This document shows, piece after piece, positions 24,587 to 30,500 of a stretch of DNA of 64,000 nucleotides (within the stretch, counting starts at the first letter, position 1; every line of letters begins with the position of its first letter). The notes beneath the pieces are model-generated. The model was not told the origin of the DNA. It worked only from the letters and a program-made list of their open reading frames with translations, and did not search any database. The stretch lies in contig OZ059895.1 of assembly GCA_964057225.1 (NCBI GenBank), forward strand, positions 6,696,001 to 6,760,000, in the 5' to 3' direction. This DNA is from Auanema rhodensis (Eukaryota; Animalia; Nematoda). The position numbers were made by a program, and so were the translations under genes.

Positions 24587-27500
24587 TTACTGGTTGGATG
24601 AGTATTGCGGTGGCATGACCTCAACCAAGGTAGCTGCTATAGACGTTGGATCGTCTTGCGCTGGTTCAATTTCCAAAATAAATGTATCCTAAAAGAAATT
24701 AATTGATTATTATTTCCTATCCTTTACATTAAATCTTACTTCATTACAATAATGCCGTAACATTTCATCATCGATTTTTACGGTTATTCCTTTGGCACAT
24801 CGTTTGTAGAGGCCGTGAATCTACAAATATGAATTGTTGGTTAGGTAAAGTGTGTCTATTTCATCTTTGATTTTCATTTTCATTTTTCATATTATAGAAG
24901 ATTAAGAACTTCCTTTTTCTGAATGAACTTTCATTCGAGGTTTTCAGAATTTTAGAAAAAAAAAATCCAACCGGAAGATAGGTGAAAGATAGAAATAGGA
25001 AATAAAGAAAAGGTGTAGTTGAAAGATTGGAAACAACACTGCAAAGAACAACAGAGATGCAGTGAATCAACGTCATATAGATTGGTATTAAAATCGAAAA
25101 GACAATCAATATATATGTTTTATAAAAAAGTAATAGAATTACATAAAAGTAGAGAAGATACCCATTATATGATTGAGTTGGGTGGTTGTTTGAAGAAACC
25201 CATTAACCACAAAAAATGTTTTGAAGAGATTCTATTCTGTCTTCTCTCTTTTTCTAACTATCGCAAATCAATTCAGAGTAAATTATATGCATTTTCTATT
25301 GGATAGTAAGATATACGTAGAAAAAGAGAGAAAGAAAGAGAGAGAGAGAGAGAGAGAGAGAGAGAGAGAGAGAGAGAGAGAGAGAGAGAGAGAGAGAGAG
25401 AGAGAGAGAGAGAGAGAGAGAGAGAGAGAGAGAGAGAGAGAGAGATGGAATGTAAAGCAAGAGTAGTTCATGTGTCTATACAGTCTCATTATTATGATGA
25501 TGAATGAGCTCATTAAATGTAATATCAAATAATAGAAGTTTTTATGTTTCTCAAAAAAAATGTTTTAGATGTATAATGACCATTGACTACATTCAGGATC
25601 GCATGTATTGGAAGTAAGCAATGAGAAATCAAAAAGTATATCACAGATAATATTCAACGTTTTCAAACGAACCTTATCGGCATCCACTGAAAATTTGTTA
25701 GCAATTGCTTGCGCTAATCCGTTAAGGTTGGATGGGACCACATGTAGAGGCATATAAATCTGCTCATCTCGTTTACGTACATATAGCATCACTGGAATAT
25801 CATCTGAATCAGGATTGTGAAGCTGACGCTCGTGCCGCTCGAAAAGCGCTCATCGTATCCCTCAGACATATATCGTCTGACAGTTCATGAATGATTGAAA
25901 GTTAAAATGGAATGCTGTATATTATGGAACAAAACTCAGAATATACAGGACTTTTCCTACACCGTATACCTAACATTGAAGTGTCTTTATATTTTACTTG
26001 ACAATCATTCATAAATACAAGGATTTGATGTGGCTAACGAGTAGATGAGAGCTTTGTTATGAGGTAAAACACATAGAACAGACAATGTGATAATGATTAC
26101 TCAATAATCACTTGTGTGAAATGTATTTTATGGAATAATGTCCAACTTACTTCGTTCTGTTGTTCGCGGTCGCTTGGCGATAGGTTCCATATCGGTCATG
26201 TCAAAGCCGAGTGATGACGTACCATCGAGATATCGAGGTTCAAACTCTTCAGGTGCCACAAATAAAGCTGCTGGCTTGTCAAGCTCACGCATATGATAAA
26301 ATTCAGATCGATCACATGCTTCATGGTATTCACCATCAGATTTTTTACGTCCGGATAAAGCTCCTGAAACTAGATTTTCATTGTTGGACGTGACAGGTAA
26401 AATGGTGACATAGATATTGAATGCACACATGTACATATATAAGACATATAGCTTACGATCAACAACAACAGTAAGAAGTGATTGGTAGAAGAAAGATATG
26501 CACATAACATCATTTCTTCAATTACAAAAATGAAATAACAACCTTTTAAGGTTGGAAGGCTTTGTTGGAAAATGATGTTGTTGATCGTAAAACACATAGA
26601 AATATACATATATCTGGCTTTGTCACATGTAATGTAATAGTAAAACAGATAAAAGCTCATTGATGTTGACATGTAATGAACAGAAATTTAGAAATATTCT
26701 TTCTCGATATATAGCAACGTATATAACTTGAATCATAATCATCATCATCATGACTACTGCTCAGTTTAATATAATGTCGTTCGATGAGAGTCTGGCTGAA
26801 CTATCGTCTACAACATGACATCAAACTGGGCAGACGATATGTGACGAGATCCATATTCAAGCAGATGTTGTTTGTTTGTTGCTCAGATATATAAGAAATA
26901 GATTGTGGTTAGATGACGCCTACCTTGCATGCGTCTCTTCTCATCTCGGCGATTCTCATGCAGCATTTTCCGGTTAGCTCCCTAAAAGCAAAAAGCTGGG
27001 TTACACACGACAAGACATTAAGATGGACGTTTGTTGTTTTGAGACATGGACAGATTGATATGAAAAGTGGTCAAAGAGAATATTCCGCTGATCAGGAACT
27101 ATGAGTGTGATCATACATATTCTGAATCAGAATTCTGATCTCTCTAAGACTGGTAAAGTGATTTGTAGAGAATAGGGATGTGAGAGAGAGAGAGAGAGAG
27201 CGAGAGGGAGAGCGATTGAGAGCTTGAGAGAAAGAGAGCAAGAGAGGGAAAGAGAGAGAGAGACCTGACGATAGCGACGAAGCTCGCTAGTACCATTCAC
27301 CTTTGTTCTGATTTTTGCTAAGAAATTTCTACTGATCTCTATTAGAAAAATTGATTGTCATGATAGTGATCCATGAGAGCAGCAAGAAATAGAAAAAGTA
27401 GAAGATTGAGCAGAAGAAATTGAAATATGAAACTTCAGACAGACAGACGAACAGACAACAGCGAACGAGCTCTTATGTTAGTTTCATATTTGGATGTTGT

Positions 27501-30500
27501 TGTTGTAGGGTGTTTAGCCTGTGATCAATACATTGACGTTCATGTTGAAGACAATAATGATTCAGATGATGCAAAAGACTAAATGAAATTATAATTTTTT
27601 TTTGAGCATCATCATAATCATTATATAAATTAATTTATTCTAATCATTTAGTAAGCTTGATGTTTTTAGTATAAATAACGATAACATTAACTATGTCTAT
27701 ATCATATACACATAATCTATGAGTTTTTAGCTATGGCTATGTGATGATCATTATGTTTGATGACGTTACATCGAAGACTTATCATATTTACAAGTTTTTT
27801 TCTTTTTGGTAAACAAAAGGAAAAGTTCAATACCCAAAAAATAAATAATGAAATACATAGTGGCATATGTATATGTGAATAATGTGAAAACTATTTATAT
27901 GCCTGCTATGCTAAAGTTTTAAAATATTTTAATTGTAAGATAAGTCTGAGTATGATAACGTCAACAAACATAAACTGACTTTTAAAAGTGACGTCACGTA
28001 TATAATATTATAAAACAAAACGGACGTTATATAAAGACTGTAGACAAATCAATTAACTGATGTTGTATGTGCCATCATGAGATGTAGCACGTACGACATG
28101 GGTCAACTGCTAGACAGGACACTCGAGATTGCACTTTTCTTGTTATTATTTAGATACCGGACTTTGATAACTTTTAGAAGACATATGGACTATTGACTAT
28201 TGATTAAGTGTTAAACTCTGTAGAACACACGGACGACGATGACGAGGACAGATGAGAGCGGACGGAGCGGAACGAACGAACCGTATGGAGCAGAGTGGTT
28301 ACCTGCCAGTTTGCGCTTCTGTGCTCGCTTGTCCTCGTCCCGCAGTTTGCGTTCAGCACCCTTTAGATAAAAAAAGCCATTTTAATCAGTCTTTTCTGTT
28401 TTTTTAATAATTTTTTGAAATTCGATTTTTGAATTTGGGCTTGGAAAATTGCTGGAAATTGTTCAAATGTTGGACACTTAAAACTTAGCCGAGAGGAAAT
28501 TATAGTGAGAACGAGGTTGTGGACTTTCAATCAAAATCAGATAACTTCAATAAAATGAAGATGCTGATAACATAACGTATAAGAAACAAGAACACAGAAG
28601 CTTATATGAGGAATCTAAATGTTGGAGAGCTGTACGTTGTTGATGTTTCGTCTTCTTCTCATCTTTTACTTTTGACACATATTTTCAATATTTCTTTTCA
28701 TCTTTTCATCATTCAACCCTTCAATTCCCTTTTAATTGAAAAATAATTTTCTTTTTTTTCTTGTATTTTATTTGAAATTTCTGTCAGTCCCTATTATGGT
28801 AAATGAGTCAAGCGAGCTTGTCATCAACGTTATTCTGAATCCGACTTCTCTTTTCGTTTCTCTTAAGCTCTTGTTCGGTATTTCAACCTTTCAGCTCCTT
28901 CTACTCTCCGTTCAACTCTGCTCTCAACTACAAATTGTATTGCAAACAACGAGATCGTATGAAGGGAGAGCAAGAGCAAGAAAGGAGATGTAAGAGAGGG
29001 AGCAGAGAAAAATGACGAAAATAAAAGAAGAAAAGTGGAAATATTGAGATGTTGAAGAGAATAGAGAAAGAAAATGAACATTTTCTCTCAGCTGAAAGTC
29101 CGCACGGACTTCAATCCTTTTGAACCACACGCATCGTTCGGAGGTACAGCATAAGCACAAAATAGTTAAAGATTGCTAAGAGAGAAAGAGGGAGAAAGGG
29201 AGATTGAGAGAAGTGGTGATAGATAGCATAAAAGGGTGAGAACAAGAGAAACAGACATCGTTGAACTATCTAGTGATCAGAGACAGTACGTTGTAAATGA
29301 ATATAATGCCTTCTTGTCTGTCTATTTGTCAAAAACAGAATGAACATAGCAAAGATGATTACTCTCTATCTCTCTCCCTGTTAACATGTCATATGTCTAT
29401 CTCTCACTCGCTTATTCTTTTCACTGTATCTTTTCTCGCTTCTCACGCATCTGAATTCAGTTGTTCGATATTGAAAACAGATGACTAAGTACTTTTGGAG
29501 AGAGCCTTTTTTGGAATTCGAGCGAGTAGTGCGCGAAAGGTCTAACTGAAAATCTCTAACCGAATAAAATCGATTTCCAGTCAGAGTTATAAATACGGAC
29601 TGTGAGGGAAAATGCAGATTGAAAGGTAGAAATATAGAGAAAAAGAAGAAGGAACTGGAAGAGAGGAATAGGAAAAAACAAAAAAAGAGAAAGAGAGAGA
29701 GAGGTTGGTGATGAAGGTTCACCCAAAAACAGTATTCGAATATCGTTTACGAGAGAAGCGGAAGAAAAATAATTTTGTAAAGTTTCGATAGAAATTTCAG
29801 ATTTCTTTTGTTCTAATCATTTTTTGTTGCTATCGCTCAAATTCATTCAAGAATTATTTTCTTTCATTAATTTTTTTCGAACAAAGTGCTATGAAAACGG
29901 AACGTTTTTTCTACAAAAAAGGAATCTGAAGATGAAACTATTTAACCGTTTTAGATAGCGACATCTTTTGAAGTTTCATGTATTGCTGTCTGTTTCGGAA
30001 TTATCATTCTGACATTACTGTGGTTGGCATTGGTTATATCGTTGTCGTCGTTCAAGCAACCATATTGTCATCAGAAGTCTTTCTCTCTCTCTCTCTCTCC
30101 CTCTCTCTCTCTCTCTCTCTCTCTCTCTCTTTCTTTCTCTTGTCTATTCATGACTTTCCTCTCGTTCACTTTCACATTTTCTCTTCATGTTTCTCCCTCT
30201 AACTTCTAAGTTTTCTTTCTAACAATACTAGTAAGCAGCATCAACAGACGTTTTTGTCATCAATGCTACCGTAATTCACAGTGGAACGAATGAAGATTGT
30301 CTTTCTGCTGCAGAAAATGAAGAAATGACAAAAAACGAATTCAAACTAAACAACCAAGAATTGACGACGACGATGGCCGTTGACAACGACAACGACAATG
30401 ATTATGCAGAGGAATAATGTTGATGACTACAGAATAATGCAATTAAAAACAACAATGAAAGGAATCTGATGATGATGCTACTGAGTCTTTGTATTGCAAG

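Follow-up and report, generated by a model that had tools for sequence, protein, structure and literature searches.

Can a single nematode gene supply two Grainyhead transcription factors that differ in the very helix with which DNA is read? The question is raised by a stretch of 64,000 nucleotides (nt) of the Auanema rhodensis genome (contig OZ059895.1, positions 6,696,001 to 6,760,000 of the forward strand), referred to here as the window. Its minus strand carries a Grainyhead gene, the orthologue of grh-1, with exons that match the Pfam profiles CP2 and GRHL1_C. A first-pass annotation, made from the letters of the window, had placed two similar exons between the constant exon ending in ...IKVFCDK and the constant exon that starts at 26363. 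It had proposed that the two, called A and B here, are mutually exclusive and swap the DNA-recognition helix.

Grainyhead binds DNA as a dimer (PMC5829564). In nematodes, GRH-1 is essential for the epidermis and for molting (PMC9929640), and it also influences lifespan (PMC8748497). C. elegans has been described with a single grh gene, for which a review gives three splice variants (PMC7471608). The complementary DNA (cDNA) that was amplified and overexpressed in the lifespan work is grh-1b (PMC8748497). No comparison of two GRH-1 isoforms was found in the C. elegans literature accessible here.

In this study, we examine the exon pair in RNA contigs of A. rhodensis, in the Grainyhead genes of other nematodes and of arthropods, and against the known DNA contacts of human GRHL1. 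The reading that best explains the data, to which we give a probability of roughly 0.85, is that A and B form an ancient tandem exon pair of which each messenger RNA (mRNA) takes one. Two GRH-1 proteins would result from a regulated choice, and the B protein would read DNA in an altered manner.

Results

Exons A and B are used singly in A. rhodensis

RNA contigs of four runs were mapped on positions 26200-31100 of the window (4,901 letters), and all of them are at least 99% identical to it. The runs are Logan contigs, all from one study, and are labelled 'RNA? (a guess)'; three GA/CT repeats were skipped as repeats during mapping. In each of the four runs the same four GT..AG joints occur on the minus strand. 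Two of these, 30835^28360 and 28282^26363, bring in exon A, and the other two, 30835^26981 and 26924^26363, bring in exon B and are the junctions by which the first-pass annotation had asked to be judged. Neither an A-to-B joint nor the skipping joint 30835^26363 was found among the mapped contigs, in which rare forms may be missed. With both junction pairs seen and no joint that includes both exons or neither, the proposal that A and B are used singly is borne out in all four runs.

The word content of the runs for an intron-rich stretch (0.41-0.75) could have suggested DNA; RNA was revealed by the spliced joints and by the peaks of depth over exons, where bins reach 20-200 as against about 3-7 in introns. 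The runs contain RNA plus some pre-mRNA or DNA, and both forms are expressed in A. rhodensis. In every run, joints to A and joints to B agree in depth within two-fold, contig depth being a poor measure of abundance.

On re-reading of the sequence, the two exons lie where they had been placed. Both had been given as exactly 58 nt long, which holds for B; the expressed exon A has 79 nt. Its donor in RNA is at 28282 (ACG at the exon end, followed by GTTCGT), 21 nt past the GTAACC at 28303, and GNHSAPY is thereby added after the helix. The 79-nt exon still runs from phase 0 to phase 1. It is the 58-nt core of A (28360-28303) that is homologous with exon B and with its C. elegans counterpart, and annotations of C. 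elegans and other species use the 58-nt donor. The acceptors of the pair also differ as had been noted: that of A is weak (ctaaAG), and that of B has a good polypyrimidine tract and ends in gcttttAG. The donors of A are unusual.

Splice-like ends alone are no proof of an exon, because 7 open AG...GT windows of 58 nt in the correct phase occur in the intron that holds A and B. The frequency of such windows is what makes it formally possible that exon B is a dead duplicate or splicing noise in A. rhodensis. Both B junctions in four runs, together with the phylum-wide occurrence of the B peptide and the strong constraint on its codons described below, refute that idea and leave it a negligible probability.

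A and B are identical at 34 of 58 nt and at 8 of 19 amino acids (aa). When the exon-A peptide was compared with the 49,619 stop-free 17-mers in six frames of the 64-kb window, exon B was the top non-self match, with a BLOSUM62 score of 44, and the runner-up, from translations of GA repeats, scored 30. By this comparison of peptides, the homology of A and B is beyond chance. The two are thus homologous adjacent exons, as in an exclusive exon cluster, and are separated in the window by an intron of about 1.3 kb.

The reading frame offers a reason for exclusivity, and translation confirmed the earlier claim that inclusion of both exons or of neither disrupts it. Either exon alone keeps the downstream frame; both together run into a stop two codons into B, and skipping gives a frameshift. 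The argument is valid for the 79-nt form of A too, since each length, 79 or 58, is one more than a multiple of three. Double-inclusion and skipped mRNAs would probably be non-productive and removed by nonsense-mediated decay (NMD); of 19 exclusive exon clusters in C. elegans with lengths not divisible by three, 14 depend at least partly on NMD (PMC4165533). Steric hindrance is excluded as the mechanism, because the A-B intron is about 1.3 kb long. A search for competing RNA duplexes covered the exons with their flanks and the islands of conserved intron sequence, and all energies fell within 2 standard deviations (SD) of shuffled controls. As the duplexes are no better than these controls, no docking site or selector is claimed.

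The exon pair is conserved across nematodes

The FCDK exon served as the query of an exhaustive profile search for homologues, which was followed by a word search centred on the helix region. The profile search yielded a Grainyhead protein of Trichinella pseudospiralis in which FCDK continues directly into a B-type helix. B-type peptides were further found in predicted proteins of Trichinella (many species), Trichuris, Romanomermis, Syphacia, Panagrolaimus, Acrobeloides, Rhabditophanes, Strongyloides, Meloidogyne, Steinernema, Pristionchus, Diploscapter, Mesorhabditis, many strongylids and several Caenorhabditis, and in genomic sequence of Toxocara. The B peptide, for which conservation in other nematode genomes had been set as a check, is therefore present phylum-wide.

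The 20 distinct B peptides compared show little or no variation at positions 1-9 and 11-16. A peptides are comparably fixed, and B is conserved at least as strongly as A. In a codon comparison of six species, synonymous differences are near or at saturation, and each pair of species shows 1-6 non-synonymous differences. The ratio of non-synonymous to synonymous substitution rates (dN/dS) of exon B is 0.03-0.09 where it could be computed. These values, far under 1, are what the dN/dS check proposed beforehand had asked about, and on codon evidence both exons are under strong purifying selection.

The pair is found in the same arrangement elsewhere. The genomic order, A and then B, is shared by C. 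elegans, Auanema sp. JU1783 and Toxocara. Paired A-only and B-only products are annotated in C. elegans, C. briggsae, Panagrolaimus, Acrobeloides and Steinernema, and the Haemonchus annotation holds a B-only product beside one with both helices. Complete A-only and B-only open reading frames (ORFs) also occur on transcript-like contigs of 2.2-2.9 kb (P0302/P0304 and P0203/P0323). Many nematode gene models are faulty, with A and B fused, with read-through into the intron, or with a single form listed; the tandem and read-through models imply that both exons exist in those genomes.

For the close relative Auanema sp. JU1783, the public model (P0202) has the A form only, with the 58-nt donor. The genome of the same species (L002) has exon A at 8120-8198, with the same 21-nt extension and the same GTTCGT donor, and exon B at 9163. 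A longer exon A and an added B isoform would probably correct the model.

Steinernema hermaphroditum has, in addition, a second and compact Grainyhead paralogue, QR680_008980 (L006, P0046), with 553 aa in a gene of 1.8 kb. Here FCDK and an A-like helix lie within one exon, and the A form is hard-wired. An A-type mRNA could have given rise to the paralogue by retrocopying. Annotated A-only and B-only isoforms still exist for the parent gene.

In the Dorylaimia the picture is different. Only 79 nt of intron separate exon B from the FCDK exon in Trichinella pseudospiralis, and no remnant of exon A was found there. Nor was such a remnant found in the 716-nt intron of Trichuris suis, where the top non-B window scores 14. 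The Romanomermis model runs from FCDK through about 50 intron-derived residues directly to B. Because the loci or models of Trichinella, Trichuris and Romanomermis carry B alone, B is a constitutive exon in the sampled Dorylaimia.

Outside the nematodes the helix is of the A type. All arthropod and vertebrate proteins fetched are A-like (GAERK[TI]RDEER), and the locus of the spider mite Tetranychus urticae has a single helix exon, of type A. No B-like exon was found in that locus, its 9.4-kb intron included, where the top score was 27 and came from low-complexity sequence. The nearest outgroups examined were arthropods. On the simplest reading of these sequences, A would be ancestral, the duplication that made B would be older than the nematode crown group, and A would have been lost later in Dorylaimia.

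The swapped segment is the DNA-recognition helix

The swapped segment is recognition helix alpha3, at the C-terminal end of the CP2 domain, and the two isoforms differ in about 17-26 residues. It aligns to ...FCDKGAERKIRDEERK of GRHL1, and without gaps to the GRHL1 and GRHL2 chains ...FCDKGAERKIRDEERKQSKRK. The DNA-binding domains of human GRHL1 and GRHL2 (5MPF, 5MPH, 5MPI and 5MR7) have the same fold and the same FCDKGAERKxRDE helix. The structure of GRHL1 on DNA shows the invariant guanine read by Arg427 and the backbone touched by Lys428 and by Arg430, which additionally bonds a flanking adenine (PMC5829564). Single replacements of contact residues by Ala lower the affinity at least two-fold, and the double mutant R427A/R430A equals R427Q in its defect (PMC5829564). 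With the alignment and these contacts, the earlier statement that the swapped part carries the DNA-contacting basic residues stands.

The two exons treat these residues differently. Exon A (GAERKLR) retains the equivalents of Arg427, Lys428 and Arg430, and with them the two conserved arginines, Arg427 and Arg430, that mark the recognition helix. Exon B (GANRKML) retains Arg427 and Lys428, with Asn in place of Glu426, Met in place of Ile/Leu429, Leu in place of Arg430 and His in place of Asp431; more changes follow further along the helix. The description of B as keeping the Arg-Lys pair, changing Glu to Asn and losing the later Arg was thus accurate. No natural variant of the kind found in exon B (Asn426, Met429, Leu430, His431) is given in the GRHL1 structural paper (PMC5829564).

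TFCP2, of the CP2/LSF subfamily (8Y7V), also departs from GAERK, with GADRKQKIDREKMEKR and a Lys at the Arg430 position; alignment agrees with the GADRK that had been given for this subfamily. TFCP2 and exon B have an EKR triplet in common. Exon B was considered as a CP2-type helix and rejected as such, its similarity to CP2 (about 7/17 residues) being not above its similarity to A (8/17) and the rest of the protein being of Grainyhead type. A hallmark expected of Grainyhead proteins is binding to AACCGGTT-type sites. Judged by its sequence, the gene belongs to the Grainyhead subfamily, and isoform B deviates from the contact set of the family.

With either exon, AlphaFold models of the C. elegans domain predict a long helix at the same place, behind the same strand, at a predicted local distance difference test (pLDDT) score across the helix of just 54-71. 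The model of the C. elegans B-isoform domain, the orthologue of the window's, has a p53-like immunoglobulin fold. It finds GRHL1 and GRHL2 (E 3.5e-16) as its best matches in the PDB and then CP2 and p53, and is of moderate quality (mean pLDDT 68.8).

Isoform A would be expected to read DNA as other Grainyhead proteins do, through its equivalents of Arg427 and Arg430. In isoform B, the bonds made to the backbone and the flanking adenine by Arg430 would be missing, with a changed affinity or flank preference as the predicted result. That B keeps the CCGG core and differs in the reading of the flanks or in affinity has, on the residues it retains and replaces, about even odds. A/B heterodimers are possible because Grainyhead binds as a dimer, and they could read asymmetric sites.

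The two helices might instead be equivalent in DNA binding, and the pair might serve nuclear import, modification, a partner, stability, or the level of productive mRNA. Both versions do have the Arg-Lys pair and a basic C-terminal stretch (KRxxKRK and RRDEKRR), and in Trichinella and Trichuris, which have only B, that helix suffices as the lone Grainyhead helix. The overexpressed grh-1b cDNA was active in C. elegans (PMC8748497), and the order of accessions suggests that grh-1b is the B-type isoform. Yet the residues by which A and B differ are almost invariant within each type throughout the phylum. Among them is the equivalent of GRHL1 Arg430, which contacts DNA and without which affinity falls. 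The freezing of two versions of a contact helix is hard to explain if both read DNA equally, and we regard equivalence as unlikely.

The missing Arg430 equivalent can also be taken to mean that isoform B is a weak-binding or dominant-negative partner of A that damps Grainyhead activity. Dimeric binding would permit this, and the at least two-fold loss of binding upon Ala replacement at single GRHL1 contacts is in keeping with it. Against it, B is the sole form in Trichinellida, is at least as conserved as A, and has a depth similar to that of A in the window's RNA. Since Trichinellida use B alone, B is unlikely to be a mere dominant negative, and this idea appears to us more improbable still than equivalence.

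Candidate elements for the splicing choice

The introns of the two Auanema genomes cannot be aligned except in islands, and two of these adjoin the alternative exons: conservation runs 58 nt past the donor of exon A, and at exon B it covers the 36 nt that precede the exon. Identity to Auanema sp. JU1783 is 94% for A and 91% for B, and 75-87% for the constant exons. The words TCGT, CGTC and GTCG are enriched 6-27 fold in the intron after A in four nematodes of two clades, namely C. elegans, Toxocara, Auanema JU1783 and the species of the window (intervals in the relatives: L001 5976-6134, L004 5738-5866 and L002 8178-8318), a motif that was picked post hoc, after the sequences had been seen, and that is a lead only. 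The choice between A and B would probably be controlled through the conserved elements in the intron next to A and B, together with the weak splice sites of A.

Other short islands, 73-84% identical to Auanema sp. JU1783, lie in grh-1 introns at 38371-38469, 36617-36681, 35514-35573, 34854-34893, 33178-33225 and 30237-30289. A plus-strand ORF at 38254-38445, which resembles a signal peptide and overlies the first of them, was considered as a nested gene and dismissed, the ORF not being conserved in Auanema JU1783.

The grh-1 locus

The features of the locus are collected in Table 1. The CP2 DNA-binding domain (PF04516) is present: three of the four matching window exons pass on their own, at 39.1, 33.8 and 70 bits (cut-off 25), and the fourth, at 17.5 bits, stays under the cut-off. 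The GRHL1-like C-terminal dimerisation domain (PF25416) is present as well, with 42.2 bits for the exon at 25849-25568 (cut-off 27). Protein P0202 of Auanema sp. JU1783 (576 aa), which around the alternative exons is about the same residue by residue as the window protein, scores 213 bits for CP2 and 110 bits for GRHL1_C, and the grh-1 coding DNA of the window is 75-87% identical to that of this species.

Table 1. Features of the grh-1 locus in the window; positions are those of the window.
Feature	Position	Strand	Evidence and remarks
Recognisable Grainyhead coding exons	24582..39634 (approximate extent)	minus	Pfam matches and comparison with Auanema sp. JU1783
N-terminal Grainyhead exons	39634-38652	minus	
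CP2 domain exons	near 38093, 35954, 33989, 30990	minus	
Constant upstream exon, ISIAVQC...IKVFCDK	30835..30990	minus	CP2 profile positions 152-204 of 223; donor GTAAGT; RNA joints to 28360 and 26981
Exon A, recognition helix plus GNHSAPY, 79 nt as expressed	28282..28360	minus	Joints 30835^28360 and 28282^26363 in four runs
Candidate splicing regulatory element, C/T- and CGTC-rich	28223..28281 (just 3' of exon A)	minus	About 95% identity between two Auanema genomes
Candidate regulatory element, 36 nt, including polypyrimidine tract and gcttttAG	26982..27017 (5' of exon B)	minus	About 95% identity between two Auanema genomes
Exon B, alternative recognition helix, 58 nt, phase 0 to 1	26924..26981	minus	Acceptor gcttttAG, donor GTAGGC; joints in four runs
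Constant downstream exon, ...KRPRTTER, 213 nt	26151..26363	minus	Acceptor gtttcAG, donor GTAAGT at 26150; takes the A and B joints
GRHL1_C exons	near 25849, 24820	minus	

Long GA/CT dinucleotide repeats are numerous in and around the grh-1 introns (20454-20960, 25283-25528, 27172-27266, 29662-29710, 30073-30145, 32076-32351, 36467-36673 and 40210-40461). The last part of the window (45461-64000) has, from about 46 kb onwards, a uniform composition with a strong AT skew.

Discussion

The joints in RNA, the frame logic and the conservation of both peptides support the view that grh-1 of A. rhodensis yields two proteins by a choice between tandem exons. A more detailed version of this view, in which B is a second DNA-reading mode of GRH-1, A/B heterodimers possibly form, the splicing choice runs through the CGUC-rich element and Trichinellida have gone over wholly to B, is tentative, and we hold it to be somewhat less probable than its opposite.

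Several points weigh against the favored interpretation of a strictly exclusive and functionally distinct pair. Contigs lose rare variants, and low-level forms with both exons, with neither, or with the 58-nt donor of A could be present; the mapped runs also carry no stage or tissue information. In-frame isoforms with tandem helices are annotated in C. briggsae (P0198), S. hermaphroditum (P0315 and P0318) and H. contortus (P0288). They arise by a shifted donor of exon A, with A followed by 'GT', 'GNH' or 'GNHHCRHLS' and then by B, and may be prediction artefacts or true third isoforms; the joint for such an isoform was not seen in the window's RNA contigs. Exclusivity may thus not be absolute in every species. 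The model confidence across the helix and the post hoc choice of the TCGT/CGTC/GTCG motif count on the same side. Finally, the functional difference between A and B is, for both isoforms, a plausible prediction from sequence and structure. Trichinellida survive on B alone, B can carry the remaining essential function, and the difference may be subtle.

The exon pair has a close counterpart in C. elegans grh-1 (Y48G8AR.1), which has the same tandem pair in the same A-B order with matching helix peptides. NP_490837.2 (UniProt G5EDF0) and NP_001293411.1 (W6RT88) have 563 aa each and differ only within residues 371-386; the two 563-aa forms are products P0209 and P0273 of our collection. Both C. 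elegans exons have 58 nt and are separated by an intron of 159 nt, whereas in the window A has 79 nt in RNA and the intron is about 1.3 kb long.

That no description of such a pair exists, as the first-pass annotation supposed, is wrong at the level of annotation: C. elegans RefSeq holds the isoforms, and so do C. briggsae, Haemonchus, Panagrolaimus, Steinernema and others. Because both isoforms are already annotated, the pair is real but not novel. No paper that discusses the pair, or what it does to the helix, was found by full-text searches of the searchable literature library. As far as we have found, the RNA proof in A. rhodensis, the 79-nt exon A and the phylum-wide distribution with B-only Trichinellida are new. 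The same can be said of the mapping of the A-B differences on known DNA contacts and of the conserved intronic elements.

Exclusive exon clusters compiled for C. elegans by Kuroyanagi, Takei and Suzuki (2014) likewise consist of tandem homologous exons of equal or similar length that keep the frame and have weak sites, and in clusters whose length is not a multiple of three, double inclusion and skipping are non-productive, as in the grh-1 pair (PMC4165533). grh-1 is missing from this catalogue of 29 clusters in 27 genes, which its authors call complete and which is enriched for membrane and matrix proteins, not for transcription factors (PMC4165533). In kind, the grh-1 pair is ordinary: a homologous exclusive exon pair that is already in databases. 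Exons 7a/7b of unc-62, which stand in the same list, also change a DNA-binding domain (a homeodomain), and with them the swap of a DNA-binding domain by exclusive exons has a precedent. In Drosophila grainy head, the alternative exons lie outside the recognition helix. That gene likewise makes functionally distinct isoforms by splicing, the N and O classes (PMC12037896).

If the two helices read DNA differently, lists of GRH-1 targets and phenotypes would need isoform resolution, and work on GRH-1 in molting, barrier function and lifespan would have pooled two factors or picked one of them. Nematode gene models with fused, read-through or single forms could be corrected. The pair would also be a natural experiment on a p53-like domain, with two versions of its helix frozen over the history of the phylum and the derived one kept by Trichinellida. 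That the two Grainyhead proteins which nematodes make from one gene differ in function is, on the sequences compared here, a good hypothesis that can be put to the test.

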